Positions 4,501 through 56,999 of a stretch of DNA of 64,000 bases are shown here, one piece after another (within the stretch, counting starts at the first letter, position 1; each line of letters starts with the position of its first letter). The translations under genes were made by a program, and so were the position numbers. Under the pieces are notes generated by a model. That model made no database searches. It had not been told where the DNA came from and saw only the letters and a list, made by a program, of their open reading frames with translations. The stretch covers positions 151,793,400 through 151,857,399 of the forward strand of contig NC_052158.1 of NCBI RefSeq assembly GCF_902713615.1, in the 5' to 3' direction. The stretch comes from Scyliorhinus canicula (Eukaryota).

Positions 4501-7053
4501 TCCCCCTTTCATAACATTACCCAACTCTGCCCTGTTAGCACTGTTGCTTCACAGCGCCAGGATCCCAGGTTCGATTCCTGGCCTGGGTCACTGTGCAGAG
4601 CCTGCACGTTCTCCCAGTGTCTGTATGGGTTTCCTCCGGGTGCTCCGGTTTTCTACCACAGTCCAAAGATGTGCAGGTTTTTTGGATTGGCCATGCTAAA
4701 TTGCCCTTAGTATCCACAAAGGTTAGGTCAGGTTACTGGGATAGGGTGGAGGTGGGGGCTTAAGCATGGTGTTTTGGGGCAGCACTGTGGCGCAGTGGGT
4801 TAGCCCTGTAGCCTCACGGCACCGAGGTCCCAGGTTTGATCCTGACTCTGGGTCACTGTCTGTGTGGAGTTTGCACATTCTCCCTGTGGTTGAGTGGGTT
4901 TCGCCCCCACAACCCAAAGATGTGCAGGCTAGGTGGTTTTGCCATGCTAAATTGCCCTTTAATTGAAAAAAATGAATTGGGTACTCTAAATTTATATTTA
5001 AAAAAGTATGGTGTTCTTTCCAAGAGCCAGTGCAGACCCGATGGGCCGAATAGCCTCCTTCTGCACTGCAAATTCTATGATTTTGATGCTATATTGTTTG
5101 ATGGGAGAATGCAGAACCCCCGGAAGGAGATGGAGGGAGGATGAAATGATCTTCCAATTGGAGCTTGGCCATTCGTGGAAAATGCCAGGAAGCACATTTC
5201 TACACAAGCAGTGGGGGGAACCTAGAATTCTCTCCCCAGAAAACTGTTGAAATGAGGGATCAATTGAATTTTTTAAATGCAGATTATTGGTAAGCAAGGA
5301 ACCAAGGTGAATGGATTGAGTTAAGATATAGAGTCCTCTTGGTCTGATTGAATGGTGCAATGCACCTAATAATGATAATCTTTATTATTGTCACAAATAG
5401 GCTTACATTAAGACTGCAATGAAGTTACTGTGAAAGTTACTTAGTGGCCATATTCCGGCACATGTTTGAGTACACGGAGGGAGAATTCAGAATGTCCAAT
5501 TCATCTAACAGCACATCATTCGGGACTTGTGGGAGGAAAGGAGAGCACCCGGAGGAAACCCACGCAAACACGGGGAGAATGTGCAGACTCCGCACAGACA
5601 GTGACCCAAGCAGGGAATCGAACCTGGGACCCTGGCATTGTGAAGCAACAGTGCTAACCACTGTGCTACCGTGCTGCCCTTGCTCCTTTACTGATACTGT
5701 GGTGCTTGATGGGCTTTAGAACTGGTTAATATTATATTCATGCAATTACATATCTATTTAAAAAAAACATTTTTTTACTGAATTACCTTACCATTGAAAT
5801 TCCAAATGATGCGACAGCCCTTGCTATGGTTATTGACTGCGATGATCCAGACTCTCCAATTATGGCTGGGATAGGAGAATCCGCTTTGCAATTAAACTCT
5901 GGAATATGTTTTTCTTGTCCGTTCATCAGTGTCAGGGCTGCTTTGAGGGCTTGAGATGGCGAAGCACAGGAATCGTGGATCCTGTAGCCCAGCGTGATAT
6001 TTGGAAGGATGGTCGGATCCTGGTTTATCTCCTTTATTGCAAAGATCATGACCTGTGTCCAGCGGAATGCTCTGAGATCAAAACTGCAGGATAACAGCGA
6101 CAGTATGTGCACACAATTTAATTACACCTTTTCAACGAATTGCATTGGTAAGAGTTTCACAGAACGAAGGGAAAGGGCAACGAAAGAGCGGTTGGATAAA
6201 ATTATGACTTGTTGGGCAGCTGGTTGATATGTTCCTCATCCCCATTCTCCTGCCTTTTCCCCTGATCCCCTCACTAATCAAGAAATCCTCTTGTTAATCA
6301 AGAACACCAGATTTGTGCTTGAGGTGCTGTTACCTACAGGGCTACAGACCAAGAGCTGGAAAGTGGAATTAGACAGAATTGTTGTGAGCAGCATAATCAA
6401 AAACACCTCCCATCAGGCTTATTCACTCTTCCAACCTCTTCCATCGGGCAGGAGTTACTAAAGTTTGAGAAAAGTTTAATGCAATGGTTAGCACAACCAT
6501 TGAATTAAAAAACTAAAAATAAATGATTAAAGTGATACTTTAAGATTGCGGTGCTTCAAACTAAACGCAGTCAAGTTTGCAGGTGAGAATAACTATTTTG
6601 GGTTGGGACATAAATACGATGTAAAGTCAACCTCTAATGGAAAAGTTTAACAATTTCTAGTTCATAATTCGGATCCTGAGGTCTGGAAACTAAAACGAAT
6701 TTGAGCAAACCGATGAAGAAAACAGATTACATCTGAAGACCTCAGCAGTAATTGCTCAAGGTCGATAGGACGAGAAGACTTCTGCACTGATCGAATGTTC
6801 TCCTGAGCTTGAAAAGTAACCACAAATACTAAACAAAGTCTCACCTGACACACTCTGAACGTGCTGGTGTGGTTTTAAATGAATTATTTCCTTCTAATTC
6901 TTTATTGTAGATGGGAAATACCCCACCAATAATGATGTCCCCATCCTCCGACAGTCCTGGCAAGTGAAATTCTCCAAAAAGTTTACACGTGGAGTCTCCT
7001 GCTCCCAGTAAGGGGAACGCGACGCAAACAACGCATTGTAACAAGTGAGGCAT
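1333..7053 (-). CDS. Gene A: V2R/OlfC-type (CaSR-like) class C GPCR, 5' part only; join(7053..6845,6083..5792,3162..2353,1560..1333); exons 5-6 lie beyond the left edge
   Basis: Signal peptide plus Venus-flytrap motifs ([90 protein letters not shown]). GT-AG boundaries and phases 2/0/0/0 match genes B and C. Confidence 0.93.
2353..3162 (-). CDS. Gene A exon 3
   Basis: ttgcag|[13 protein letters not shown]...IKPWQ|gtaaga; 810 nt, open frame (within ORF 2323..3231). Confidence 0.95.
3770..4533 (+). mobile_element. Degraded L2-type LINE RT fragment
   Basis: LQSG..SEMVLIKITN.. and QSSMLGSLLF.IY resemble L2 RT motifs; many frameshifts. Confidence 0.65.
4534..5085 (+). mobile_element. HE1-like V-SINE (CR1-type tail) with a second V-SINE nested at 4776-5005
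   Basis: tRNA-like head + V-domain (ggtcactgtctgtgtggagtttgcacattctccc..); nested copy flanked by TSD atggtgtt (4766-4773 / 5008-5015). Confidence 0.88.
5367..5679 (-). mobile_element. HE1-like V-SINE, tail type B (..cacagtaacttcattgcagt..tgtgacaataaagattatt)
   Basis: Shared head and V-domain; (ATT)n end. Confidence 0.85.
5792..6083 (-). CDS. Gene A exon 2
   Basis: cctgcag|T TTT GAT..; FDLRAFRWTQVMIFAIKEIN..GESGSSQS..GISM|gtaagg; 292 nt. Confidence 0.93.
6221..6471. repeat. Inverted duplication, arm 1 (partner 8743-8981)
   Basis: Reverse complement of 8743-8981 including the same junctions between unrelated repeat pieces. Confidence 0.88.
6845..7053 (-). CDS. Gene A exon 1 (signal peptide, start of VFT)
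   Basis: ATG at 7053, MPHLLQCVVCVAFPLLGAG..DGDIIIGGVFPI; ends CV-AG|gtgag (phase 2, 209 nt). Confidence 0.9.
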
Positions 7054-20020: not shown

Positions 20021-23000
20021 CTATTTAAAAAAATAAAAGTACATTAAATAAAGTTCCTTTTAGAAATTAGAACTATATTAATAGGTTAGAATTTACGAAT
20101 GACTAATTATAAATATGTGTGTGTTTACGTACCTGTCACGTTACTGATTTCACCTTCAGCACATTCTATACAATCGAAGCAGCAAATAGGTTGTCCTTTT
20201 CTGGCAGCTTTCCTTGTTCCAGTGGTACAGCTTGTGGAACAAAGTGCTTGTGGTATCTTATGCAAAGGAGAGGAGTACATGTTTGGAGCTTTGCAAGATT
20301 TCAAACTAGATCTAGTGACCAAGTAGCACAGTCTGATGTAAAACTTTAGGATCCAAATTTGATTTTAATATGTGGTGCCTTAGCCAAAATAAGTGTCAAA
20401 GATCGAAAAACTGGATTTGTAGGGGACTTGTGTTGGAAAGATTGATATCTGATCTTTTTTTAATGTAATTCTTTTTAAGTTATGCATTCATTCACAGGAT
20501 GTGGGCATCATGGGCAATGACATCATTTATTGTCCATCTCTAATTGTCTTATGAAGCTAGTGGTAGCAACTGAGTGACTTTCTAGCCCATTTCATAGAGC
20601 AGTTCAGACTCAGGCACTTTGCTGTGGATCTGGAGTCACACATGGGTCAAGCCAGGTGGCAAACCTCCTTCCCTACAGGACATTATGGAGCCAGTTGAAT
20701 TTTCCCAAAAATGCCTTTCTATATTGATGTCATTAATTGAATTTAAATTCGCCAAATGCCATGGTGGGATTTAAACAGATCCCATGATCATTAGTACAAG
20801 GCTCTGAATTACTAGCATAGTAACATAACTCTTATGCTACTATTTCCAATAATAATTGCTACTGTGCTATTCAACCATGGCCAAGTCACATGCTGGTCCA
20901 CTCTCGCAGCACAGCCATGCAAACAGGAGGGTTCGTGAAGATTAATTGAACGAGGAACTGAATTTCCTGAGACTTCTCTCCCTCATCAGCATTAAATTAT
21001 TTGGACATAGTCTGCTGGAGACCTGAAAAAATACGGAAAGACCCTATCAGCAAAGTAAATCTACGGCTACCTTTCTCTGGCCTCCGCTCCAGACAACGGC
21101 TCCTTCGTTAATGATGAACTCTTGGCCTGGGGGTGCGGATCCATCATAATATCCGACACTTACTACATCAGCCCCATTCCCAACGCTTTGCCAATTTACG
21201 ATGTCGTACGTTGCAACTGGATCCCCATTTTCGTCGAAGTGTACAGTTTCACCAGTCCGAGTGGTGAAATTGACCGCTTTCAAATACTGCAATAGCTTTA
21301 GAGAGAAGTGAAACAACAGGACTTCTATTAAAAAAATATAGCTGTGCAGGGGCCTTGCAATGTTTTCTATCGCACCATGAATATAATTGGAGCACTTTCT
21401 ACCAGAAGCTTTAAATGTAATTTCCATACCTGCTGTGATTGATAATTAGAAGCGTGTTTACACGCGTTATAAGTGGATGCTCCATTCATGGCTTCGCATG
21501 AGAACATATTGTGCAGAGCATGTGCAAGAGCATACGTTGCTTTGTACACGTTATACGTAACTCTCAGGTGAGATGAATCGGTGTAGGTGTTCTTAATTGT
21601 TTGCAATTTCTCTCTCCCTGTACATTCTTGCTCCGTTCCATTTGCTTTATTTCGCGGCGAGCTCAGACGACAACTGAAAGTTGATTCCCAAAACTCTTCC
21701 AGTAAACTATTTCCTGGGTCTGCCGAAGGGTGTATTTGCATTAGGAATTCCTGAAAACCGGGTATATTTACTTGACGTATTGCGATCCCCAATGTTCCAA
21801 TTAGAAACTTCCGCCTTTGTTCTGAGGGTAGAATTGGTGTGGATATCCAGGCCTCGCTTCCTATCCATTGGATGCCGGTGATATCTTGCCTCGCGATCTC
21901 CTTTAGCAAAATGGCCATATCACCTTCAGCGACGAAAGCCACAATCACTTTTGTGCTTGATTCCTTCACAGCTCTCACAGTCTTGAGGAGCTTTTCCCTG
22001 GGATAGGTCCTGTAAAAGGACTCTGTAAAGGCAATGCAAACGCCGAGCTCCCGCACGGCCTCTACGAACGCTTGCATCCCAAAGTTACCATAGTCGTTGT
22101 CACTCTTGATCGTTCCGATCCAGTTCCATCCAAAGTGTTTCACGAGTTGCGCCAAGGCCCTTGCCTGATAGTAGTCACTGGGTATTGTTCTAAAAAATGA
22201 CGGGTATTCCTCTTTGTTGCTCAAACATGCACATGTTGAAAAGTAACTGACCTGTGGGAAATGGAAACTTTAGAAACAATATTGCAAAAGTCACTAAGGC
22301 AATGTGTCAGTGGTCAGGCTTGCAAATGTAGGATTTGCTTTAGAAACAATATTGCAAAAGTCACTCCGGCAATGTGTCAGTGGTCAGGCTTGCAAATGTA
22401 GGATGGTGCAGAACTTTACCCCTGAACTCTGCCTCATGAGGCGATTGCAGGTGATACACTGCAAAGTGAACTTCGGATGTGAGCACGATTGACATGTCGA
22501 ATATATTCGACAGAGATTTAATACCCATGATGTGGGGATGCCGGCGTTGGACTGGGGTGGGCTCAGTCAGAAGTCTTCCAACACTAGGTTAAAGTCCAAC
22601 AGGTTTGTTTGGAATCACTAGCTTTCACCTGAGGAAGGAGCTATGCTCCAAAAACTAGTGATTCCAAACACACCTGTTGGACTTTAGCCTGGTCTTCGAA
22701 GACTATATATTAATACGTCATTGTATAGTGGCACGGTAGCACTGTGGTCAGCACTGTTGCATCACAGGGCCGGTGTCCCGGCTTGGGACACTCTCTGTAT
22801 GGAGTCTGCATGTTCATCCCATGTTGGTTTCCTCCGGACACTCCGGTTTCCTCCCACAAGTCTCGAAAGATGGGTTGTTAGGTGAACTGGATATTCTGAA
22901 TTCTCCCTCTGTGTACCCGAACAGGCGCCAGAATATGGCAACTAGGGGCTCTTCACAGTCACTTCATTGCAGTGTTAATGTAAGCCTACTTGTGACAATA

Positions 23001-26000
23001 AAGATTAAATTAAGTTATAAAAGACTGTCGGATATTCACTGCCATGGCTCAAATGTTTAGAATAAAAGCACAATACTGCAGCTGCTGGAAATCTGAAATA
23101 ATAACAGAAAATGCTGGATATAGTCAGCAAGTTCAAAATGACACTTTCACACAATCCTGCTGAGTTTATCCTGCATTTTCTGTTCATATTTCATACGTTT
23201 AGTTGGTTCACTTGTGTGTCATTATTGTTCATTCTGTTGACTGCGCGGAATAATTCCTAAAGCCCTTCTGCCTGATGTCAAGGGATAAAACATATTAAAC
23301 ACTCTTTCCGCGAAATGTAGTGTGAAAGGTGGTGGTCAGCTGCCTTGTTGAATGGCTGCAGTCCATGTGGTGTAGGCACACCCACTGTGCTATGAGGGAG
23401 GGAGTTCCAGGAATTTGACCCAGCCACAGTGAAGGAAGCGTGGATATATTTCCAAGTCAGGATGGTGAGTGACTTGGAGGGGAACCTCCAGATAATGGAG
23501 TTCCCATGTATTAGCTGTCCTTGTCCTTCTAGGTGGTAGTGGTCTTGAGTTTGGAAGGTGCTGCCAAAAGAGCCTTGGTGAGTTCCTGCAGTGCAGCTTT
23601 AGATGTTGCACACAGCTGCTACTGTGCTTTGGTGAGAAGGGGGAGTGAATGCTTGTGGAAGGGGGAATAATCAAGCTGCTTTGTCCTGGATGGTATCAAG
23701 CTTCTTGGGTGTTGCTGGAGCTGCAGTCATCTAGGTAAGTTGAGAATATTCCATCACACTCCTGATTTATGTCTTGTAGGTGGTGGACGGGCTTTGGGGA
23801 GTCAAGAGGTGAGTTACTCGACGTAGGATTCCTAGCCTTTGACCTTCTCTGGTAGCCACTGTATTAATGTGGATAGTCCATTTCAGTTTGTAGTCACTGG
23901 TAACCCCCAGGATGGTGATAGTGGGGAATTCCGTGATGGTAATGGAATGTCAAGGGGCGATTATTTGATTCACCCTTATATACGGAATAAAATGCGGCAT
24001 AAATAATAAACTGCAAATTACCCTGAAACCGTTCACAATACCAAGTGGGAACGAGGACATAAAAGTAAAAACCAAAGCCGATGACCATTGTTATTGAACT
24101 TGGATTGCAAGGCAAACCCTAGGAACAGTTACATGACTTTATTGTGTAACACACATGCTTAACAAGACGACTTTCAATAACTGCCTCTCGGTCAGCAACA
24201 TTTAATCTTTCTTGCTTATTAGGAATATTATCAATGTCAAATATATATTTAATCATCTCAAATGCAAACGGCTGAGTGGCAAGAGAGGGATAATGAGTGA
24301 ATTATATATTCCATTTCTTATCCTGTGTCCGCAAGGATGACACAGCAGTGAATTTAAAAATTCCATGATCTAACCATTTGTCATTATTCCTTCAATTGTT
24401 TATCTCGGTTGATTTTAATGCAAATTTGGAAAGAAGGATGCAAAGTTGTGTCAATTTAATCCACAATTGTACTGATTTCAGAGATTGCATGGTGTGCTCT
24501 AGGATTCTCCAAATAAAAATGACAATGCCGTAAATTCTTAACGGTAAGAAGTCTCACAACACCAGGTTAACGTCCAACAGATTTGTTTCAAATCACTAGC
24601 TTTCGGAGCACTGTTCCTTCCTCAGGTGAAAGAAGAGGTATGTTCCAGAAACATATATATAGACAAAGTCAAAGATGCCAGACAATGCTTTGAATGCAAG
24701 CAGTTGAAGGTAATTAAGTCTTTACAAATCCAGAGATATGGGGTAACCCCAGGTTAAAGAGGTGTGATTTGTCTAAAACCAGGACAGTTGGTAGGATTTT
24801 GCAAGCCCAGGCCAGATGGTGTGGGATAAGTGTAATGCGACATGAATCCAAGGTCCCGGTTGAGGCCGTATTCATGTGTGCGGAACGTGGCTCATGAGTG
24901 CGGCCTCAACCGGGACCTGGGATTCATGTCGCATTACATTCATCCCCCACCATCTGACCTGGGCTTGCGAAATCCTACCAACTCTCCTGCCTTGAGACAA
25001 TTCACACCTCTTTAACCTGGGGTTACCCCTATCTCTGGATCTGTAAAGACTTAATTACCTGCAAATGTTCGCATTCAAAGCATTGTCTGGCATCTTTGAA
25101 TTTGTCTATATATATGTTTCTGGAACATACCTCTTCATTCACCTGAGGAAGGAGCAGTGCTCCGAAAGCTAGTGATTTGAAACAAACCTGTTGGACTTTA
25201 ACCTGGTGTTGTAAGACTTCTTACTGTGCTCACCCGAGTCCAACGCCGGCATCTCCACATCGTAAATTCTTAAGAAGGAGATTACTTACCATGGGGATTC
25301 CGAAAGGATTCAGTAACCTTGCTACTGCGGCGGACTGAGAGGACCCCGAATCAGCTACAATCGCATAAATATTCCTGCAGTCCTCCTCTGAATCAGCATC
25401 CCGTTGCCCATCCAAAATCTCAAAGGCTGCTTTGATAGACAAGGATGGCATGCCGCAAGAATCGTAAATCTGGTAACCCAGTGTAATATTCGGCAGTAGC
25501 GTCGGGTTCCGGTTTATTTCATCAACGGCGTACATCATTGCTCGCACAAAGCGAAATTCTCTGAAATCAAATCTACAACATGCATAAATGGCAGTAGACC
25601 AGTTTTTTAAAATCACATTGAGATTTGGCCAAGTATACGCTTTTTCCAGATGTGATTGTACCGTTACTGGAGTTTCATAGTAACTAAGATGCGCTTATTA
25701 AATAATTGCAAACCATCACATGGTAGTGACAAAAGCAATGGCAACATACTCCCAGCCGGTATGTGTACATTTATATATATCTGCATACATAAATATATGA
25801 TATGCCACGTATACTCTTTCAACTCATAGACAAGTCAACGCAATCTGGTTTTAATAGTCATGGTTGAAGGATACTTTTCCCCTTTATTATTGCTGCACTT
25901 ACACATGTAAATAAAATTACATATACAAGCAAACTCAATGATGTAAGGCCGCCGCACAAAACACGAAACAATATGTACTTAACTGCAAATTTCAACTAAC

Positions 26001-37556: not shown

Positions 37557-37602
37557 TGAGCCAAGCGACAACACTTGTTTAATGCGGCGGAGGATGTTAG
37601 TA

Positions 37603-37817
37603 ATGTATCCCCAGTTGTTTTGGGCGCTGTCTTTATTTCGTTTCTTCCCAGCCCACGCCACGAATGAAGCGTCCTGCGAACGCTGGGGGGCCGATGATTT
37701 GCTGAACCTGTTTAAAGATGGAGATATCATCCTGGGCGGAATTTTCCGGGTACACGCCGAAGTGAATCACCGGGACCTGACATTTAAAATCCAGCCGCAA
37801 TCTTTGACCTGCACGAA
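37603..37817 (+). CDS. Gene C exon 1
   Basis: [19 protein letters not shown] signal peptide, [13 protein letters not shown]; ends CT-AA|gtttgt (phase 2). Confidence 0.85.
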
Positions 37818-40800
37818 GTTTGTAAACGTTTCCGACTAATTTTAATAATGTTTGTTTTCAAATACATTCTCACTCTGCAGTTTTCGGGTCGCAAACAGTT
37901 AAGAACCGTTTCGAAGTGGGAAGTAATTTAAGATTTTAAATTTCTTCGAATGTTAATTAGAAATAATAGATTGTGAAACAAATGATCGAATTTACTGACG
38001 TATTAATAATAATAATCTTTATTATTGTTACAAGTAGGTTTACATTAACACTGTAATGAAGTTACTGTGAAAAGCCCCGAGTCTCCACACTCCGGCGCCT
38101 GTTCGGTACACAGGAAGAATTCAGAATGTCCAATTACCTAACATCAGCGGCTGGATTCTCCGATTTGTAGACTACGTGCTGACGCCGGAGTAGAAACAGT
38201 GGCGTTTTACGCCAGAAAATACAGTGCAAAAGCTGCACTAACAGCCATGCAGCGGTTAAGACCCGACTTTAGCTGCGGATACAGCCAGAGAATTGCCGGG
38301 TCCGTGGCCACACATGTGCACGGCAGCAGCCTGCAGCGGCCGCATTATGTAACACGGCGCAAACCCAACCTGCCACATACTGTCCACCAGTAACCCCCTC
38401 ACAACCTCCTGACCATCCCCCATCAGTGCCCCAGTCCCCGCCAAAGCCTGCAGCAAGGCTCCCCGCACCCCCCGCCTGTGGCGGCTCTGGACTCAGTCCG
38501 CAGCCGCCACACCAGGTTCACGAAAAAAAAAGGATAAATGAGCCACGCCATCGGGAACTTGGCCCATCGAGGATGGAGCATCAGGGGTAGAGCTTCAGGT
38601 GAAGTCCTGAGGCCAGCCATACGGCGTGCAGCGTACTCTTCGAATGTGCCATTTTCAGGTCAGTGGAGCATCGCAAGAGCAGTGCCATCCTCGATTTCGG
38701 TGCAAACAGGGATTCTCTGGTCGATTGCCGAACGCGATTTTGCCATTGGTGACCAGAGAATACAGCCCCACGTCTTTCAGGACTTGTGGGAGGAAACCGG
38801 AGCACCTGGAGGAAACCCACGCAGACATGGGGAGAACGTGCAGACTCCGCACAGACTGTGACCCAAGCCAGGAATCGAACCTGGGGCCCTGAAGCTGTGA
38901 AGCAACAGTGCTAACCACTGTAGCTCTTATGATTTGTGAAACTAGATTAAATTGCTTTGGTTCATCCTTAAACACTGTTTCCCTTCGGAAGCCAGTTCCC
39001 AATGTCCATTTGAAATTGGCGAAGGACGAATAATGTTGCTTGTTTGAGACCTCCGTAATGTTCATTTTTGAAGCACGGATAAAGATATCAACACTTTAGG
39101 TCGAAGATACAGAGTTCCTGTTTGTCAGGTTTCAATTCCACATTGTGTGTGCAATGTGCAGTAATATCTTGCATTTTAATATAGGAATGATATTTTCCAC
39201 TCTTAACTTAATAGAATTCTGGGGACATGTGATTAACTGTGTTTTGCTCTTCTGTGTTATTTATTGCCAATTTGTTGCCAGTTGTTACCAATTTGTTGAA
39301 ATTCTGCCCACTATTTGTTGTGATGTGCCCGTACCATCAGCTTCAATATATTTATCCCGTGGACGGAATTAATCGGAAACTTGATGCGCCTCTGCCAAGC
39401 TGGAGGAACGAAATCCAGGTTTCCCAACGGAGGTGGGAATTTCGCGCCTCTCCGCTCGCCAGTCCAACATTTCCCGCCCATGGAAAGCAATGTTGGAGGA
39501 GGAAATTGGCGGACTGGCGATTTGCAGACAGTGCGAAATTCAGTCGAACTTCAGTTGGGAACCTCTCTGAACGACAGTCACTGGTGGCGCAAGCTTATTA
39601 GCTAACGCCAACACCAACAACTGTGAAATCCTGCAGATATTTACTTATTTAAACAAATTATCCAAAATATATTCCCGCAGATTCTGGTTCAGGTTTTTCC
39701 GTTTCGCGCTCACCATGATATTCGCCATCGACGAAATAAACCAGGATTCAGCTCTGCTTCCTGATGTTACACTGGGATATCGGATTTACGACGCATGCAC
39801 CACGCCGAGTTTATCACTGAAAGCAGCATTTGAATTTTTGAACGGACGACAAGATATGTCACTGTACAATCCCTGTAAAAGGACACCTCTGATCTCTGCT
39901 GTAGTTGGTGATTCCGGGTCATCGCAGTCTTTAGCAATAGCGACTCTGATTGGCATTTTTAGGATCCCCATGGTAAGCCATTTGTTACACTATTGTCACA
40001 GTCAGTGCACAGGAACTGAAAAAAGAAAATGCCCACCTCCGTTTCCACACTTGGATTACTGTGTACAGTTCTGGTCACCCTATTGTAGAAAGGATATTAT
40101 TAGACTAAGAAAGAAAGCAGAAAAGATTTACTAGGATGTTATGGTGACTTGATGGTTTGAGTTATAAGGAGAGGCTGGATAGACTCGGACTTTTTTCCTT
40201 GGAGCGTAGGAGGCTTAGCGGTGATCTTATCGAGGTCCATTAAATAATGAGGCGCATCGATAAGGTAGATAGTCAACACCTTTTCCCAAATGTAGGGGAG
40301 TCTAAAACTAGAGGGCATAGGTTTAAGGTGAGAGGGGAAAGATACAAATGGGTCCAGAGGGGCAGTTTTTTTCACACAGAGGGTGGTGAGTGTCTGGAAT
40401 GAGCTGCCAGACGCAAGTAGAGACGAGTAGAATTTTGTCTTTTAAAAGCATTTAACAGTTATATGGGAATGATCAGTATAGAGGGATATGGGCCAAATGC
40501 AGGCAATTGGGACTCGCTTTGTGGTAAAAACTGGATGGCATGGACATGTTGGGCCGAAAGGCCTTTTTCATGCTGCAATCTTCTATGATTCTATGACTCT
40601 ATACTCATCCCAGCATTTACTATCGCATTCATTTAAATACAATGTGATAACGGATTCATCGCAATATTTCATTCCAGTTCAATATTTATTATTTTTGCAG
40701 CACAATAATTATTTAATTTACTCCATTAAAATGTTTATGGAATACATTTTTGGTATTACTCTTTTGAATAATGCGACAAAATATGACGTTGACATCCCGC

Positions 40801-43800
40801 AAAGGGTCAGCTATCTTGACTCAGTTGTGGATTTCTCACTCCCACAAAGCCTATCCATTGAACCGTACCTCTGGTTGCCTCCTGAATATCACCCAGCTGC
40901 TTCCCAGTGCCCAGAGTCACACCTTTTGGAGTGAGTCAGAGTGTTTTAGTGCTGAAAGGTAAATGGGATGGAGCAGCTTAGGCACTGTTGGGGTTTTAGC
41001 ATTTTGGAGTTTATCTGGTAAAAGGGCGGCACAGCAGCACATTGGTTAGCACAATTGCTTCATGGCTCCAGGGTCCAAGGTTTGATTTCTGGCTTGGGTC
41101 ACTGTTTTGCGGAGTCTGGACATTCTCCCCGTGTCTGCATTGGTTTCCTCCAAGTGCTCCGGTTTCTTCCCAAAAGTCCCGAAAGATGTGCAGCTTAGGT
41201 GGATTGGCCATGCTACGTTGCTCCTTAGCAGCCAAAACAGTTAGATGGTGAATTGGGTTATGTGAATAAGGTGGAGGTGTGGGCTAAAGTCTGGTTCTCT
41301 TTCCAAAGGCCGGTACAGACTCGATGGGCCAAATGGTCTCCTTCTGCACTGTAAATTCTATGATCCTATGATAAATGGTACGTCGGCAGCCAATGTGTAG
41401 GAACAGAGGGAAACATGGACCTCGGAATATGGGTGCCTCAGGAGACAATGAAAACTTTGGATTTTCGGCTGATTTTTTTTTCCTGTGTATTTGTACATTA
41501 TGTGACTAGGTTTATCTGTGGGGTACATGGTGAAACTGTGGTAAGTGACACAATGATTACATGCTGCTTGGCGGGAATGTGACTGGTAGTTTTGCGGGGG
41601 AAAAAACAATCAAAAAAGATTTTCATATATATTGGCTCAGGGAATGTGTCCATTGCTGGCTGGAACAGCATTGATTGCCCATCCCCAACTGCCCTCCAAT
41701 TCAGAGGGCATTTGATAGTCAACACATTGTTGTGGATCTGGAGACAGATTGGAGTCAGGAGGGCAGATTTCGTTCCCTAAAATACGTTAGTGAACCAGAT
41801 TTTTTTTTTAACGACAATCGTGAATGGTTTCATGGTCAGCATTAGACTTTTAATTCCAGATTTATTTTTGTATTGAATTCAAATTGCACCACCTGCCCAT
41901 GGTGGGATTTGAACCCAGATCCCCAAATCTTGTCCTGGGTCTCTGGGTTACTAGTCCAGTGGCAAAACCACTATGCCTCCCCCATCGAGCCAAACTGACC
42001 CTGTATCAAATGGATAAATAGATTTTCATTTGTCTTCCCCCCCCCCCCCCCCACTCACCTGATGAAGGAGCTACTCTCCGAAAGCTAGTGATTCAAAACA
42101 AACCTGTTGGGCGTTAACCTGGTGTTGAATGACTTTTGACTGTTTCTCCCCCAGGTCAGTTACCTTTCGACCTGTGAGTGCCTGAGCAACAGAAAGAAAT
42201 ATCCCTCATTTTTCCGAACGATCCCAAGTGATTACTTCCAAGCCAAAGCCTTAGCCCAGCTTGTGAAACATTTCGGATGGACATGGATCGGGACGATTAG
42301 AAGTGATGATGACTATGGGAACTTCGGAATGCAGGCTTTCACAGAGGCTGTGCAACAATTAGGTGTCTGCATTGCCTTTTCGGAGACATTTCATGCAATT
42401 TACCCAAGGGACAAATTGCGAAAAACTATCGCGACGATAAAGAAATCATCCACAAAAGTCGTGCTCGCCTTCCTCGCGCAGTCTGACATGGAGGTTTTAA
42501 TCAAAGAGATAATACGGCAAAACGTGACGGGCATACAGTGGATAGGAAGCGAGGCGTGGGCTGCCACCTTAGTGGTACCAGCCGCAGAAAGTAAACGATT
42601 CCTCTCTGGCACGATTGGGATTGCGATCCGCAAAGTGGATATCCGAGGGCTGAAGCAGTTCTTGATGCAAGTCCACCCTTCTCTGTATCCGGGAAACCTT
42701 TTAGTGAAGGAGTTTTGGGAAACGACGTTCGGCTGTATCTTGAACAACACAGGAAACAAAACAGATGGCACTCCAAGCGACCCGGGGATTCATGAATGCA
42801 CAGGAAGAGAGGATTTGCAGACAGTGCATAATTCATTTACCGATGTATCTCAGTACAGAGTGGAATACAATGTGTACAAAGCAACTTACGCCATCGCTCA
42901 TGCGCTCCACAATATGCTGTCGTGCAAAAGTAGAACAGAATTGTTTTCCAATAACAGTTGTACAAAAGATCTGAACTTTGAACCGTGGCAGGTAAGAAAT
43001 GTGTACAATCGTTAATGCCAGCTGAACGTGGTCAATACCAACCAACATTTGGGTTTGAGCTTGTTAATTGTGTACACTGAACGTTTGCTGTAGATTTACG
43101 TAGGAATCTTTATACCCGCGTGTCAGTCGTGGCTCTGGAGTTCGGAGATTGTGGATTCAAGTTCAACACCAGAGACTTCAGCATAAACTCTACCCGGATA
43201 GTTCGGTGCCATTCTGAGGGAGAACCGCCGTCCAGTATTCCAGTAGCAGGTCCCGGCCGTTGGAATTTTATGTTCCCGCTGGCAGCTGCCCCCCGCCCGC
43301 GGGTTTCCCTGCGGCCTGGGGTGACTTCAATGGAAAGTTCCATTGACAACCGGCGGGTCCCGCCGCCAGCGAACGTCGCGCCGCCGAGAAACACGCGGCG
43401 GAAGTGAGGCAGAGAAATTCTCCACGTGGAGTTTAATTTTCACCCCTCAACGTGTATCATTCAAACCAACAATATCACATTGCTCCTTGTGACAACGTGC
43501 AGTGCGTAAATGCAGCCTTTCCTGCATTACAATCGTGACTGCATTATGCATTGCAATAGCGAGTGCATTACATTCCAACATTTAGTGCATGACAACCGTC
43601 AGCGTATTAAACAGAGTGCATTATGTCATTAACCGCAGTACAACAGTGAGTGCAGTACAACAGTGACTCCGTTACAACAGCGAGGACATGACAACATTGG
43701 GTGCATTACAACAACGAGTGCATTACAACATTGGGTGCATTACAACAGTGACTGCGTTACAACAGCGAGTGCATGACAACATTGGGTGCATTACAACAAC

Positions 43801-46800
43801 GAGTGCATGACAACATTGGGTGCATTACAACAACGAGTGCATGACAACATTGGGTGCATTACAATAGTGAGTGCGTTACAACAGCGAGGGCATGACAACA
43901 GCGAGTACATTACAACAGAAAGTGCATGACAACATTGGGTACATTACAACAGCGAGTACATTACAACAGCGAGTGTATTACAACATTGATTGCAGTATAG
44001 CAAAGAAACGACAGAAACCTTAGGAACATCATCATACAGAGGGATCTGAGCGTGCAGATCCACAGTTCCCTAAAAGTGGCAACACAGGTGGTCAATGTGA
44101 TTAAGAAGGCACATGGCATCCTTGCCTTCATCAGCCAGGGCATTGAGTACAGGAGTTGGGAAATCATGTTGAAGCTATATAAAACCTTCGTTAGGCCGCA
44201 TTTGGAGTATTTCATGCAGTTCTGGTCGCCACATTATCAGAAGGACGTGGAAGCTTTGGACAGAATGCAAAGACGGTTCACCAGGATGTTGCCTGTTCTC
44301 GAGGGTGTTGGCTATGAGGTGAGGTTGAATAAACTAGGATTGTTTTCACTGGAAAGATGGAGGCTGAGAGGAGACCTGATAGAGGTTGACAAAATTATGA
44401 GAGACAGAGACAGAGTGGATACTCAGAGGCTTTTTCCAAGGGTGGAAGTGTCAATGACATGAGGGCACAGGTTCAAGGTGAGAGGGGGAAAGTTTAAGGA
44501 AGATTTGAGGGGTAAGGTTTTCACACAGAGAGTGGTGGGTGCCTGGAACGTGTTGCCAGAGGATGTGGTGGAAGCAGGCACATTAGCAGCATTTAAGAGG
44601 CATCTGGATGGGGACATGAATAGGGAGGAAATAGAGGGATGTGGAATGAGTAAGGGCAGAAGGTTTTTTTTAGTTCGGGCATCATGATCGGCACAGGCTT
44701 GGAGAGTCGAAGTGAAATTCCTGTGCTGTACTTTACTTTGTTCTTATAGCATTGAGTGCATTACAACAGAGTGCATTACAACAGTGACTGCATTGTAACA
44801 GTAAGTGCATTACAGCAGTGAGTGTATTACAACAGTGACTGCATTAGTGCATTACAGCAGTGAGTGCATTACAACAGTGACTGCATTAGTGCATTACAAC
44901 AGTGAGTGCATTACTACATTCAAATTTTCTGTGAAGCATTTTGGGAGCACCTGGGACTGTGCACAGACTTGGAAACATACACAGAAAATAAATGCGGGAG
45001 CAGGCCATTCGGCCCATCGAGTCTGCTCCGCCATTCATTAATATCATTTCTGATGATCAAATTCAACACCTTCAACCCAGATCTCGCCTTCCCTCCATAT
45101 CCCTTGATCCCTTTAGCCCCAAGACCTACATTTAATTCCTTCTTAATCTTTTCCTCAGGTAAGCACAGTAGAACTGTACACATTACTCCAAGTGTGGTCT
45201 CACCAATGTCCAATACAATTGCAGTAAAACATCTCTGTTCCTAAACTCAAATCATCTGGCTATGAAGGCCAGTATACCATTTGCCTTCTTTACTGACTGC
45301 TGCACCTACCTGTATTCCTTTAGTGACTGATGTACCAGGGCACCAAGATCTCGCTGAGTATCTGCCACTCTCAATTTACACACATTCGAATAATAATCTG
45401 CCTTCCTATTTTTGCTGCTGAAGTGGATAACCTCATGTTCATCCACATTATACTGCATCTGATATCCATATGCCCAATTCGCTCAGCCTGTCAAAATCAT
45501 ATTGAAGCATCTCTACATCCTTCTCACAGCTCACCCACACACCCCACTTTGCATCATCTGCAAATTTGGAGATAATACATTTCTTTCCATCATCTAAATC
45601 AGTAATATATAATGTGAACAATTGGGGTCCTAGCACAGATCTCTGCAGTACCCCACTGGTCACGACCTGCAAATTAGAAAAATACCCATTTATTCCAACT
45701 TTTTGTTTCTTGTCTGCTAACCAGCTTTCTATCCATCTCAAGACATTGCCCACAATTCCATGCATTTTAACTTTACATAGTAATTTGCTATGTGAGATCT
45801 TGTTGAAAACCTTCGAAAGTGTAAATAAATTATATCCACCAGTTCTCTCTGGTCAACTCTGCTCATTACATCTTCAAAGAAATCTAGTAGATTTGTCAAG
45901 CATTACCCTTTCGTAAATCCATGTTGACTTTGCCTGGTTATACCACTGCTTTCCAAATGCTGTGCTACCCAATCCCTGATAATGGACTCTAGCAACTTCC
46001 CTACTACAGTCATTAGGCTCACTGGTTTATGGTTCCCTGTTTTCTCTCGACCTCTCTTTTTAAATACCGGCTTCTGTTATCTACGCTCCAATCTGCAGGA
46101 ACCATTCCAGAGTCCAAAGAATTTTGAAAATGACCACCAATGGATCAACTATTTCAGGGGTCACTTCCTTAAATACTCTGGTATGAAGATTATCAGGCCC
46201 TGGTGATTTATCCATCTTCAATCCCATTAATCTCCCGAAAAACCATTTCTCTCCTATAACTGATTTTCTTCAGCTCCTCTCTAAAACATGTGCTACTCAG
46301 AGCATCCGATACATTATTCATGTCTTCCTTTGTGAAGATGGAAGCAAAGTACGAAGTTAGTTTCTCAGCCATTTCTTTGTTCCTCATAATGAATTCCCCC
46401 GTTTCTGACAGGAAGGGGCCTTCATTTTTCTCAATTGTTTTCTTTTTATGTGCCTATAGAAAATGTTTCCATCAGTTTTTATGTCACTGCAAGTTTACTT
46501 TAATTCCCTATTTCCCCCTTCTTAATCAATCCCTCAGTCCAATTTTGCTAGATTTTAAACTGCTCCCATCCTCAAGGCCATTGCTTTTTCTTGACAATTT
46601 CTATGCTTCTTCTTTGATCTAATATTATCGCTAATTTCACTTGTAAGCCATGGTTTGGCCACAATTTCCTTTCCACTCTTGCGCCAAATAGGAATAAACA
46701 ACTTTTGGAATCTCACTATCCATCTCGATAAAGAATGCGATCATATTATGGTCACTCATTCCCAAAGGTCATCTGACAACTAGATGACCAACTAATCCTT

Positions 46801-49800: not shown

Positions 49801-52476
49801 ACTTGAATTCCTGATTGCAGCGTATTATCTTTTCTTCAGGTTCCAAAGGCAGTTTGTTCTGAGAGCTGCACCCCTGGCAAAAGGAAGGCAACAAGGAAGG
49901 GAGAACCGAAGTGTTGTTTTGATTGTTTACCATGCCCAGAGGGTGAAATTAGCAACATCACTGGTAATAAGGAAAATATAGGTCTTCAGCTTATTCTGCG
50001 GGATGCTCTCTGTGAATGTATTGCAGAAGGAGGGGAGGTGGTGATGTCGTGGTATTGTCACTGGACTAGTAACCAGATACCCAGACTATTGCTCTGGGGA
50101 CCCAGCTTCAAATCCCGCCACTGCAGATGGTGAAATTTGAATTAAAATAAAAATCTGGAATTAAAAGTCGAATGATGACCAATGTTGTAAAAACCGATTT
50201 GCTTCACTGAGGGAACAAAATCTGCCATTCTTACCTGGCCTGGCCTACATGTGACACCAGATCGACAGCAATGTGGTTGACTCTTAACTGTCACCTCAAG
50301 GGCAATTAGGGATGGGCAATAAGTGCTGGCATAGACTGCAGCGAATAAAAAAACATTCCTGTGTGGCCTATTTTAATAGCGACATCAAACCAATTAAAAG
50401 ACATTCTGCGGCTTGAAAGCAATAGGCTGACTCTTCAGAGCAGAAATGAGGGTGTACTCCACTACCAATGTCAGTGGAATGTTGGGTGTGGTTATTTGCT
50501 CCATAAGGGTCGTTCTGCTCAATGTTTATCCCTCATCCAAAAACCCAAAATGTGTCATTTGCTAATGATGGTATTTTTTCTGCTGGGTGCAAAGGCGCTG
50601 TTGCGTTTCTCACAGGTCAGCGGTGGCAACACTTCAAAACCCATTAACAGAACAGATTGGAGAAGTGAGAAATCGCTTTCCATCGAGAAAATAAGACCTG
50701 AGAGGAGATGTGATGGTGGTCGCCAAAATCATGAGGGATCTGGGCAGAGCAGATGGCGTGAGATTGTTCCCACTTTTGAGTGGGTGAAGAAGGAGAGAGC
50801 ACAGATGTTAAACAATTGGCAAAAGGAACCAAAGCCAGGAGAGGAAAAACATTTCAGGCGACGTGTGGTTAATGTCTGGAATGCACTGGCTGGGAGTGTG
50901 GTGGAGGCAGGTTCAGTTGAAGCATTCAAAGAGGAATTAAATTGTTATATTGTTCAGGGTTACCAGGGAGAAAGTGGGAATGGCACGAAGTGAATTGTTC
51001 ATTCGGAGAGCTGGCACAGACGTGGTGGGCCGAATAATAATCGTTATTAGCGTCACAGAAAGGCTTACATTAACACTGCAATGACGTTACTGTGAAAATC
51101 ACCTAGTCGCCACACTCCAGCACCTGTTCGGGTACACAGAGGGAGAATTCAGAATGCCCAATCCACCCAACAAACGCGTCTTTTGGGACTTGTGGGAGGA
51201 AGCCAGAACACCCGGAGGAAACCCACACAGACATGGGGAGAACGTGCAAACTCTGCATAGTGACCCAAGCCGAGAATCGAACGTGGGACCCTGGCGTTGT
51301 GAAGCAACAGTGCTAACCACTGTGCTACCGTGGCCTCCTTCTTGAGTCTGGCAACTCTGAGATTCTATGTGATACTTCACTGTCTTCAATGGGATGTTCT
51401 GAATTTGTGAATTGAGTTTTTAGAAATGCAAGTTCTTTGCGTCCTTCTCGGTAAAATAGAGAGAGAAAATTCGGAGACTCCATGAGTATCAATATATTAC
51501 TGGCGCATAATGTACCGGTGACACTTTTAAAAAATATTATTTGATACGAATGTTCTTTTAAAACCCGTTCTTTTTTTTAGATGCTACAAATTGTATCAAA
51601 TGTCCTCTGGAATACAGGTCCAATCAGGAGAGAGATCAGTGCGTGCTGAAGGAAATCGAATTCCTTTCCTTTGGAGAGACCATGGGAATTATTCTGCTCG
51701 CTGTGGCACTGTTTGGAGCCTGTATCACGGTGGGGGTCTTTTCCACATTCTACTTTTACAAAGACACTCCAGTTGTCAAAGCCAATAATTCCGAATTAAG
51801 TTTCCTCCTCCTTGTGGCGTTAACCTTGTGCTTTCTGTGTTCAATCGCGTTCATTGGAGAGCCCTCGGTCTGGTCTTGCATTTTACGCCACACAGCTTTC
51901 GCTGTCATCTTTGTCCTCTGCATATCGTGTATTTTGAGCAAAACGGTTGTCGTGGTGATGGCATTCAATGCAAAGTTTCCCAACCACAATATGATGAAAT
52001 GGTTTGGCCCGACGCAACAGCGGCTGACTGTTGCCTTTCTTACAATGGTGCAGTGCTTAATCTGCACAGTCTGGCTGAGCACGTTACCTCCCTATCCTCG
52101 AAAGAACAGCGCTTTCGCAAAAAACCGAATCATTTTCGAATGCAACGTAGGTTCTGCAATCAACTTTTACTGTGCCCTGGGTTACATTGGATTCTTGTCT
52201 TGCGTGTGTTTCCTGGCCGCCTTTCTCGCTCGGCAGCTTCCCAACAATTTTAATGAGGCGAAACACATCACTTTCAGCATGCTTATCTTTTGTGCCGTGT
52301 GGGTTACTTTCATTCCAGCCTACATAAGTTCTCCTGGAAAGTATGCTGTGGCCGTGGAGGTGTTCGCTATTTTGGCCTCTAGTTTTGGGTTGCTTATCTG
52401 TATCTTTGCCCCAAAATGTTACATTATCCTGTTTAAACAAGCAGAAAACACCAAGAGGCACATTATGGGTCATTAG
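37603..52476 (+). CDS. Gene C: complete V2R/OlfC-type (CaSR-like) class C GPCR, ~863 aa; join(37603..37817,39681..39972,42155..42991,46876..47103,49840..49963,51581..52476); in-frame upstream ATGs at 37582 and 37594
   Basis: Six exons with the same phases as gene B (215+292+837+228+124+896 = 2592 nt). VFT, CRD and 7TM motifs present. Start chosen from TATA position and signal-peptide length, so uncertain. Confidence 0.94.
38003..38922 (-). mobile_element. V-SINE tail B interrupted by a Harbinger-type MITE
   Basis: SINE sequence stops at 38147 and resumes at 38769. Confidence 0.82.
38148..38768 (+). mobile_element. Non-autonomous PIF/Harbinger-type element
   Basis: TIRs cggctggattctc / gagaatacagccc; 3-bp flanks cag / cac; related to 62339-62993. 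Confidence 0.72.
39681..39972 (+). CDS. Gene C exon 2
   Basis: cccgcag|[33 protein letters not shown]|gtaagc; 292 nt. Confidence 0.93.
40030..40600 (+). mobile_element. CR1 LINE 3' fragment just downstream of gene C exon 2
   Basis: [13 protein letters not shown]; (ttctatga)n tail. Confidence 0.85.
41025..41370 (+). mobile_element. HE1-like V-SINE (CR1-type tail)
   Basis: Head, V-domain, ..cttctgcactgtaaattctatg. Confidence 0.85.
42055..42091 (+). ncRNA. Minimal type I hammerhead ribozyme motif with canonical CUGAUGA core (sense strand of gene C intron 2)
   Basis: TCAC CTGATGA A GGAG-CTACT-CTCC GAAA GC TA GTGA. Confidence 0.8.
42055..42154 (+). mobile_element. Penelope-like terminal-repeat fragment ending at the exon-3 acceptor of gene C
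   Basis: Colinear with ~25139-25238 (..aaacaaacctgttgg..ttaacctggtgttg..gactt..actgt..cccag). Confidence 0.82.
42155..42991 (+). CDS. Gene C exon 3
   Basis: ccccag|[31 protein letters not shown]|gtaaga; 837 nt. Confidence 0.95.
43170..43430. mobile_element. GC-rich MITE-like repeat (related copies ~830-960, ~60735-60920)
   Basis: Shared ggccgttgg.att..tgttcccgc.gg and ccgccagcgaac..gccgccgagaa blocks in opposite orientation to 60735-60920. Confidence 0.55.
43520..44915 (+). repeat. 17-bp minisatellite (TGCATTACAACAGTGAG and variants), split by a CR1 insertion
   Basis: Units at ~43520-43995 and ~44752-44915; alternating variants tgcattacaacaacgag / tgcatgacaacattggg. Confidence 0.9.
44003..44744 (+). 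mobile_element. CR1 LINE 3' fragment inserted into the minisatellite
   Basis: [26 protein letters not shown]; TSD tatagca 43996-44002 / 44745-44751. Confidence 0.9.
44980..46800 (-). mobile_element. CR1/HER1 LINE, internally deleted
   Basis: [44 protein letters not shown]. Confidence 0.88.
46876..47103 (+). CDS. Gene C exon 4
   Basis: ttctag|[34 protein letters not shown]|gtaaga; 228 nt. Confidence 0.94.
47271..47494 (-). mobile_element. V-SINE, tail type C
   Basis: Closely similar to 4776-5005. Confidence 0.85.
47917..48230 (-). mobile_element. V-SINE, tail type B
   Basis: Homology to 5367-5679. Confidence 0.85.
49117..49456 (-). mobile_element. HE1-like V-SINE (CR1-type tail)
   Basis: Homology to the other copies. 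Confidence 0.85.
49840..49963 (+). CDS. Gene C exon 5 (cysteine-rich domain; absent from the ORF track)
   Basis: cttcag|[42 protein letters not shown]|gtaata; 124 nt. Confidence 0.93.
50690..51335. mobile_element. Old CR1 3' fragment (50690-51032 +) followed by V-SINE tail B (51033-51335 -)
   Basis: [26 protein letters not shown]; SINE homology. Confidence 0.78.
51581..52476 (+). CDS. Gene C exon 6 (end of CRD + 7TM)
   Basis: ttttag|[32 protein letters not shown]..7TM..stop at 52476. Confidence 0.96.
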
Positions 52477-55847: not shown

Positions 55848-56999
55848 ATGGTGTTTCTGTCTTTATCTTCTATTTGGAATGACTTCCTCCCATTCCATTT
55901 AACACATCCCGTTAATTAGCATTCTATTTAATCCTCTAGAGAGCTTTTCTGTCCATTACAATGTTCTGATCATTTCTTTACAGCTCATGTTTCACTGCAG
56001 CCCCAATTGTTAACACATTCTGATTTTGAAATGATTTTACGGACATCTTTTGTCAGTGCTCAATTTTCTTTCCAGCAGAACTTTCTTCCTTATTATTTAG
56101 GAAAAGCCTCGACTGCTTTCATATAGTTTCTTCTAATGTAAAATTGATTCCCTTCCCTGAAATCCATGACAAGCTGTTTAAGAGAAAATCCATAGTGGCT
56201 CTGTTGGGACCTGAAGGACTGACATTTAAATTATAATTTCATTCCGCCAGTTTGAAAAAAAAACATTTCAATATGGCCAATATCTAAAAAATTACATTCA
56301 AAAATTACAAACTGTCAATTTTTAAATGTGTAGGTCTTATGTCCAGATCCAAAGTCCCCACAGAACATAAAGTAATAAATAGAATTTCACTGTCACTGCA
56401 ATGAAAGCTATGTTTTCACAAGTTTAGAGGTTAGTTAGCTTCACGAATACAAATTTAATTGAAACCATGTTTTCTATTAACCAATTGCAACAACACAGAA
56501 CAATTGAAACAAAATAGCACGTGCTTAGAGAGATAAACTTAATCTGTTTCTGTTCTTTCTTCAGGAGCTGATCCACATTATTGTAATGATATTGACTATA
56601 ACTGAAGAAGTTGTTAGCTTTCAAAGTGAAAAAGAACCTTCAAAACTTGCATCAAAGGGTTAGGAGGCCGTGCTTTCTACACCTTTAAGTTCTGAACATC
56701 CACGTCAGTTTCTGTAATTTAAAATCACTCCAAACTTTTCTCCAATTCCTGATGCACAATCTTAAATTGAAATGCACATTTTAGCAACTAGTTTTGCAAT
56801 TTTATACTTCTATGCAGCTTAGAAAAAAATTGATCCCTGCAATGGACTGTGAAGCGGCATTGCTAAACTTTGTTTTATGTTGCCAATTATCAAGTCTTGG
56901 ATACCCCATTTCAATCAGTTGAGAACCCAAACCATGGACTGGATTTTGTGCATCCCGTCTCGAGTTAAAAGTTGGTGGCGGGAAATCAGCCCAGAGGAG

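Follow-up and report, generated by a model that had tools for sequence, protein, structure and literature searches.

The stretch of DNA examined here, referred to as the window, comprises 64,000 nucleotides (64 kb) of the Scyliorhinus canicula genome (contig NC_052158.1, positions 151,793,400 to 151,857,399 of the forward strand) and carries three tandem family-C G protein-coupled receptor genes (A, B and C; V2R/CaSR-like), which were identified by Pfam scans of long open reading frames (ORFs). Exons were searched singly and full-length comparisons were made with database proteins. Gene C lies on the + strand and its protein is S. canicula XP_038671370.1. Exon 3 of this gene (42155-42991, +), which encodes the ANF_receptor ligand-binding domain, was intact over 279 codons and 100% identical to residues 87-365 of XP_038671370.1. 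Exon 2, as placed in the NCBI model, occupies 39715-39972 (+) and is followed by the donor GTAAGC at 39973, and intron 2 spans 39973-42154 with its acceptor AG at 42153-54. Within this intron, on the transcribed strand, a complete minimal type-I hammerhead ribozyme motif was located at 42055-42091, with 63 nt between the motif and exon 3 and the predicted cut 67 nt upstream of the exon. An earlier reading of this DNA made from the letters alone (the sequence-only reading) had described a hammerhead here, and its sequence, strand and intron placement held when re-examined, as did the predicted cut between 42087 and 42088 and the lack of a nearby antisense arm, no antisense copy of the motif having been found within gene C. 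The gene C transcript contains exactly one complete motif, the nearest same-strand copy being 17 kb away in another gene.

The motif is opened by a 4-bp helix I formed by TCAC (42055-58) and GTGA (42088-91), which is an open helix, the next pair being a C-U mismatch. The catalytic core C3-A9 reads CTGATGA (CUGAUGA in RNA; 42059-65) and is followed by a bulged extra A at 42066, between A9 and G10.1, which was present in all copies within the window. Helix II is formed by GGAG (42067-70) and CTCC (42076-79), is closed by the G10.1-C11.1 pair (G42067-C42079), and consists of 4 bp with a 5-nt loop, CTACT (42071-75). The G12-A15.1 segment GAAA (42080-83) includes the conserved G12 A13 A14 as GAA at 42080-82 and runs into the palindromic AGCT (AGCU; A15.1-G-C-U16.1, 42083-86), which is self-complementary and takes the place of helix III. 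The predicted scissile bond follows A17 (42087), which satisfies the non-G requirement at H17. In cis, the AGCU could form only a single A-U pair closing a 2-nt loop, which is impossible, and the motif is therefore without a helix III of its own.

A structured descriptor was built from the core, an optional bulge, a G-C-closed helix II, GAAA, the palindrome, a non-G H17 and a 4-bp helix I. Within the 64 kb it matched only at 42059(+) and 25143(+), and no match was obtained in 200 Markov-shuffled windows. The loose pattern CTGATGA..GAAA was not enriched in the window, with 4 matches against 1.8 expected. With 20-150 nt of flanking sequence included on either side, ViennaRNA gave the two-stem scaffold as the minimum-energy local fold; the 37 nt alone gave a fold with one pair more than the named structure. 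The named two-stem structure was computed at -6.8 kcal/mol, with pair probabilities of 0.4-0.96 depending on flank length. None of the Rfam hammerhead families (Hammerhead_1, Hammerhead_3, Hammerhead_II, HH9, HH10) reached the gathering score anywhere in the window, and no hammerhead match was obtained over 41900-42250 even at E values up to 10. As the motif is without helix III this silence is expected, and it is no argument against the motif.

For minimal hammerhead ribozymes (min-HHRs) of Penelope-like elements (PLEs), the features that emerged in the original survey without being imposed by its search descriptor were the nucleotide between A9 and G10.1, the G10.1-C11.1 pair, a palindromic 15.2-16.2 and a short helix I (PMC4209133, Cervera & De la Pena 2014), and the gene C motif has all of these. 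With its core, bulge, G10.1-C11.1 pair, palindrome in place of a helix III hairpin, and short helix I all present at 42055-42091, the motif is, by every sequence-level criterion, a PLE-type minimal hammerhead.

The motif forms part of a fragment of about 80-90 nt at 42052-42143 (+), which has the form of a 5'-truncated tail of a Penelope-like repeat. Its 3' limit is ambiguous (approximately 42133-42154) because the repeat tail, GACTTCTTACTG.G.CCACCCCAG, resembles the target sequence. BLAST within the window aligned 42052-42143 with 25136-25227 at 85% identity and with 24629-24540 at 82%, and overall an identity of 82-85% across some 90 nt was found with four other copies, arranged as head-to-head twins. 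These represent two further insertions of the same repeat, both in intron 2 of gene B, which lies on the other strand. The larger is a head-to-head palindromic twin of 2 x 340 nt at 24541-25264 (inverted repeats I5 and I10), with motifs at 25139-25175 (+) and 24629-24593 (-), and the gene C fragment matches its outer ends. The second is a small inverted twin at 22529-22704, to which the gene C fragment is equally close. The complete motif at 42059(+) in gene C can thus be set beside four others in the window: 25143(+) is also intact, 24625(-) keeps its core intact and has a single A-C mismatch in helix II, 22624(+) carries G12A and G15.2A and has a dead core, and 22626(-) is truncated at G12.

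In its details the gene C copy was closest to the 22.6-kb subfamily, the helix II and loop stretch reading GGAGCUAC in gene C versus GGAGCUAU in that subfamily and the post-cut sequence reading UUCA versus UUCC. The sequence-only reading had placed the differences from the gene B copies at N7 and the end of loop II, with core and stems preserved. This stood for the palindrome copies, from which the gene C motif differs at N7 (G to T) and at four adjacent loop-II positions, and required refinement for 22624(+), where one of the two changes in the helix II and loop stretch (G to T) abolishes the fifth pair of helix II and so shortens it from 5 to 4 bp.

Several further observations concern the way these copies were inserted. 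The gene C copy (42053/42054) and the + arm of the 22.6-kb twin (22620-22624) are independent insertions which both start 1-3 nt 5' of helix I and share a common tail end at the ...GACT position; the start just before helix I may be a preferred point of 5' truncation or template switching. The palindrome at 24541-25264 ends about 25 nt from the exon 2 donor of gene B (CCCATG/GTAAGT, minus strand, ~25291/25290). At the orthologous palindrome site in Scyliorhinus torazame an extra 126 bp repeats the hammerhead-bearing end (locus L006, ~1378-1503), which implies the gain or loss of a unit here after the two species diverged. We also considered whether the gene C copy and the sense copy 5' of gene B exon 3 (22626-22529) could descend from one insertion that preceded the gene duplication. 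The idea was rejected, as the gene B copy breaks off at G12 and the motif in gene C is whole, and the two lie at different distances from their exons.

To date the insertion, orthologs of gene C were found by profile search and by search with the full S. canicula protein, and their loci were compared. Orthologs were obtained from Carcharodon carcharias (86% identity), Heterodontus francisci (85%) and Heptranchias perlo (83%), as well as from S. torazame, whose protein falls in the same 90%-identity cluster and matches exon 3 at 94% by tblastn; runs of N in the S. torazame gene C locus (L005) were kept as they are. A Chiloscyllium locus (L001) proved to be a paralog (72% nucleotide identity) rather than an ortholog and was used for the shared acceptor only. 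At the orthologous site in Carcharodon, Heterodontus and Heptranchias, which represent three other shark orders, both the insert and the C run at its 5' junction were absent, and the upstream intron (...ggataaata.atttt.tttgacttt.ccccag) directly joins exon 3 at GTCAG. In S. canicula the upstream sequence ends in tttgtctt and is followed by 16 C (42037-42052, +), the fragment, and a second tttgact...cccccag. S. torazame carries the insert at the same place. The empty outgroup sites indicate that the insertion is younger than the split between Carcharhiniformes and Lamniformes, and the shared position in the two Scyliorhinus species indicates that it is older than the split between them.

The junctions themselves can be read in two ways, either as a target-site duplication (about 15 bp) with expansion of the upstream copy into the C run, or as a microhomology-guided insertion. 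The C run most likely arose by expansion of a copy of the CCCC that the target site ancestrally contained; it consists of 16 C in S. canicula and of TT plus 6 C in S. torazame (L005, ~6090-6098), and is an unstable homopolymer. Correspondingly, the pyrimidine tract and acceptor at 42133-42154 (+; cag/GTCAG) would be either the second copy of the target-site duplication or the zone of microhomology. An acceptor of the same sequence was found in the outgroup orthologs, which have no insert, in paralogs B and A, and in the Chiloscyllium paralog. The repeat was accordingly rejected as the source of the acceptor AG, the same sequence having been in place before the insertion.

Conservation of the motif was then assessed between S. 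canicula and S. torazame. The 37-nt motif showed no changes (0/37), compared with 5/41 in the rest of the fragment, 4/22 in the pyrimidine tract, 8.9% substitutions in the background of intron 2 and 3.2% in exon 3. The binomial probability of such identity is about 0.02, and unchanged 37-nt windows make up 4.9% of the same intron, which contains six other identical runs of 41-67 nt. The gene B copies served as controls. The copy antisense to its host gene, which being antisense cannot act in the host pre-mRNA, was likewise 37/37 identical in S. torazame, the sense copy had 5/37 changes including a broken helix I in S. torazame, and the dead copy had 3/37. Pooled, the motifs had 8/148 changes (5.4%), indistinguishable from background. 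The gene C motif shows no sign of selection, and its identity lies within the neutral range. Conservation of the orthologous site relative to other PLE copies had been proposed as a check by the sequence-only reading, and the outcome was an empty site in three sharks and an identity in S. torazame that is equalled by one of the controls and compatible with neutral change.

With respect to catalysis, single min-HHRs have given no detectable cleavage, with dimers or trimers cleaving weakly (PMC4209133; reviewed in PMC6765202), and the caution of the sequence-only reading that minimal hammerheads are weak as monomers is correct (PMC4209133). A PLE hammerhead of Anolis cleaved only in the presence of added PLE protein, and RNA-seq showed no ends at its cut site (PMC11167929). 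An AGCU/AGCU duplex was computed at approximately -2.5 kcal/mol, which gives a dissociation constant (Kd) in the millimolar range or weaker. Such a Kd would probably lie far above any plausible concentration of the pre-mRNA, and we infer that the gene C motif is inactive in vivo.

The surroundings of the insertion were also recorded. The insertion site is directly preceded by a tRNA-derived short interspersed element (SINE) at 41650-41992 (minus), which S. torazame also carries at the corresponding position and Carcharodon does not; many more copies of it and of other tRNA-like SINE families occur across the window (repeat families D3-D20). Intron 3 of gene C contains a minisatellite with a 17-bp period (43531-44057, about 30 units, consensus near GTGCATTACAACAGNGA), and a second, shorter minisatellite block lies 0.7 kb downstream at 44754-44887. 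As regards the gene model, XP_038671370.1 begins at a Met inside exon 2 and is without exon 1, and the S. torazame model has an 80-aa first exon with a 97% match to window positions 37582-37821. At the other end, the last 37 residues of XP_038671370.1 map to 56547-56660, 4 kb past the seven-transmembrane exon, the frame of which ends in its own stop at 52474-52476. Both ends of the model look unreliable.

Taken together, we consider it very probable that the intron holds an inert, solo, 5'-truncated tail of a Penelope-like element with an intact-looking but partnerless minimal hammerhead. Most PLE min-HHR copies are solo and probably truncated PLEs, and pairs 100-700 bp apart on opposite strands have been reported (PMC4209133), which is the arrangement of the head-to-head twins in gene B. 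The derivation from a Penelope-like transposable element put forward by the sequence-only reading fits all the sequence-level evidence, both the repeat homology and the PLE min-HHR features. The hammerhead of the parent element presumably serves to process PLE transcripts, and its helix III would be built by AGCU pairing between two copies, such as tandem or multimeric PLE RNA provides, perhaps with the help of the element's protein. A fragment of this repeat would have been inserted in the lineage leading to Scyliorhinus, after the lamniform split and before S. canicula and S. torazame diverged. Because the gene C pre-mRNA contains one copy only, negligible self-cleavage would be expected from it, and the motif would be removed with the intron.

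The connection of the repeat with an autonomous PLE is drawn from sequence resemblance and is probable rather than direct. Translation of the longer palindrome arm (24885-25140) gives a short ...GLN... stretch that ends in a stop, the inner arm (24885-25010, +, frame 3) reaching its stop about 40 codons on. We take this stretch, which is too short for a test, to resemble the C-terminal GLN end of PLE GIY-YIG endonucleases; if so, the arm would be the 3' end of a 5'-truncated PLE, starting in the last codons of the ORF. Certain results weigh against an inert PLE tail. No reverse transcriptase or GIY-YIG ORF adjoins any copy of the repeat within the window. The two-stem scaffold is the predicted local fold, and the intact core and helices are identical in two species at about 9% intronic divergence, with a nominal p of 0.02-0.05, an identity which is compatible with weak constraint. 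Finally, protein-assisted cleavage has been reported for a PLE hammerhead (PMC11167929), and some activity may occur in cells expressing the PLE protein.

A rival reading is a function in the host, namely a lineage-specific exaptation in which the sense-strand hammerhead would cut some of the gene C pre-mRNA 5' of the branch point, either unaided or with a chaperone or the PLE protein, and so lower or gate receptor output. In its favor, the sense strand carries an intact core, the 37 nt are unchanged in S. torazame (37/37) next to 41 nt with 5 changes, and folding of the scaffold is predicted. Amniotes are known to possess domesticated intronic hammerheads (PMC6155905), and protein-assisted cleavage has precedent in Anolis. 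We nevertheless regard exaptation as highly improbable, since the insert is absent from three outgroup orthologs, its identity is in the neutral range and is equalled by a control copy antisense to its host gene, and it has neither a helix III nor a second copy in the transcript, single min-HHRs being inactive in vitro (PMC4209133). On these grounds the tuning of receptor splicing or output suggested by the sequence-only reading is unsupported. A broader form of the idea, in which solo sense-strand intronic PLE hammerheads would be cleaved wherever PLE protein or a chaperone is present, imposing a trans-acting cost on host transcripts, with the gene C copy, just ahead of the branch point, kept in Scyliorhinus as a weak attenuator of the receptor, is extremely improbable. 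Slow intronic ribozymes are reported not to abort co-transcriptional splicing, which tells further against exaptation.

A different possibility is that the tail rather than the ribozyme matters: with the old upstream intron sequence pushed some 100 nt away by the insertion, it could now supply or reshape the branch point and pyrimidine tract of exon 3. The insert does lie 12-20 nt from the acceptor, branch-point-like sequences occur in the tail and in the duplicated target (candidate adenosines at 42117, UUAAC, and 42139, UUGAC), and exon 3 is intact and constrained in both insert-bearing species (3.2% versus 8.9% in the intron). However, the acceptor and proximal tract (ccccag/GTCAG) pre-exist in outgroups and paralogs, a target-site duplication would keep the proximal signals so that the transposable element need contribute nothing, and the tail has not been conserved within Scyliorhinus, changes between the two species numbering 5/41 there and 4/22 in the tract. 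We consider this unlikely, and what host-level possibility is left may concern splice signals rather than catalysis, the branch point being carried by the tail or the duplicated target. That the motif merely resembles a hammerhead by chance, in sequence which is not a repeat, would be in keeping with the unenriched loose pattern and with the failure to reach any Rfam hammerhead model, but is next to impossible given that the full descriptor was absent from all 200 shuffles and that homology to the four other window copies and to the S. torazame copies continues for 50 nt beyond the motif. Such continuing homology shows the motif to be repeat-derived rather than a chance match, and chance resemblance was rejected.

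An inert Penelope-like tail has little consequence for receptor biology. The locus demonstrates that repeat origin can fully account for an intact-looking intronic ribozyme core, and that, unless matched controls are considered, sequence identity of two close species is no evidence of constraint. It also provides one dated example, with its empty site, of a 5'-truncated PLE tail which was inserted beside a splice acceptor and tolerated.

Among known hammerheads, those of newt satellite 2, Schistosoma Sm-alpha and the avocado sunblotch viroid (ASBVd) type (Forster et al. 1988, cited in PMC6765202) are similar in that helix III is unstable or absent and the active form is a double hammerhead of two copies. 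In these systems tandem arrays or multimeric RNAs give the second copy, whereas the gene C transcript contains no other copy. The intronic hammerheads of amniotes (HH9 in RECK, and HH10; De la Pena & Garcia-Robles 2010, summarised in PMC6155905) share a sense-strand type-I motif in the intron of a protein-coding gene and are thought to descend from retroelement ribozymes. HH9 and HH10 have loop-loop tertiary contacts and are conserved across birds and mammals or across amniotes; the gene C motif, in contrast, has no helix III and no tertiary loops, gives no Rfam match and is absent from the examined orthologs outside Scyliorhinus. Were a host function true, it would be a non-amniote counterpart of the RECK-type hammerheads; the evidence is against this, and the motif is not a domesticated, host-conserved hammerhead, as the orthologous site is empty in Carcharodon, Heterodontus and Heptranchias.

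Closer parallels are found among the retroelements. The non-LTR (long terminal repeat) retrozymes of metazoans (PMC7229834, Cervera & de la Pena 2020; Li et al. 2026, bioRxiv 10.64898/2026.07.22.740005) are likewise short, non-coding, hammerhead-bearing and related to the terminal regions of PLEs. They consist of tandem units bracketed by two hammerheads and are able to release circular RNA, whereas gene C holds one motif and no tandem unit; with a single motif and the next same-strand copy 17 kb off, a retrozyme unit was rejected. The best match is with the PLE min-HHRs, which are widespread in fishes, amphibians and reptiles (PMC4209133; Lunse, Weinberg & Breaker 2017, cited in PMC6765202). 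The shared features are the type-I topology, the core, the unpaired nucleotide between A9 and G10.1, the G10.1-C11.1 pair, a palindromic 15.1-16.1 tetranucleotide suited to dimers in place of a helix III hairpin and a helix I of 4-5 bp, together with a distribution in which copies are mostly solo or truncated and some form close opposite-strand pairs. The gene C copy departs from them in its helix II, which is 4 bp here (5 bp in the sister copies) compared with the 6-8 bp typical of Schistosoma and Drosophila, and in being an intronic tail fragment of about 80-90 nt with no PLE ORF linked to it in the window. Retrozymes are present in Chondrichthyes, with many copies being intronic monomers (PMC7229834; bioRxiv 10.64898/2026.07.22.740005), and 42-44% of the related copies in Xenopus are intronic (bioRxiv 10.64898/2026.07.22.740005), a proportion which makes an intronic sense copy ordinary. 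The gene C fragment is a retroelement relic of an already known and ordinary kind.

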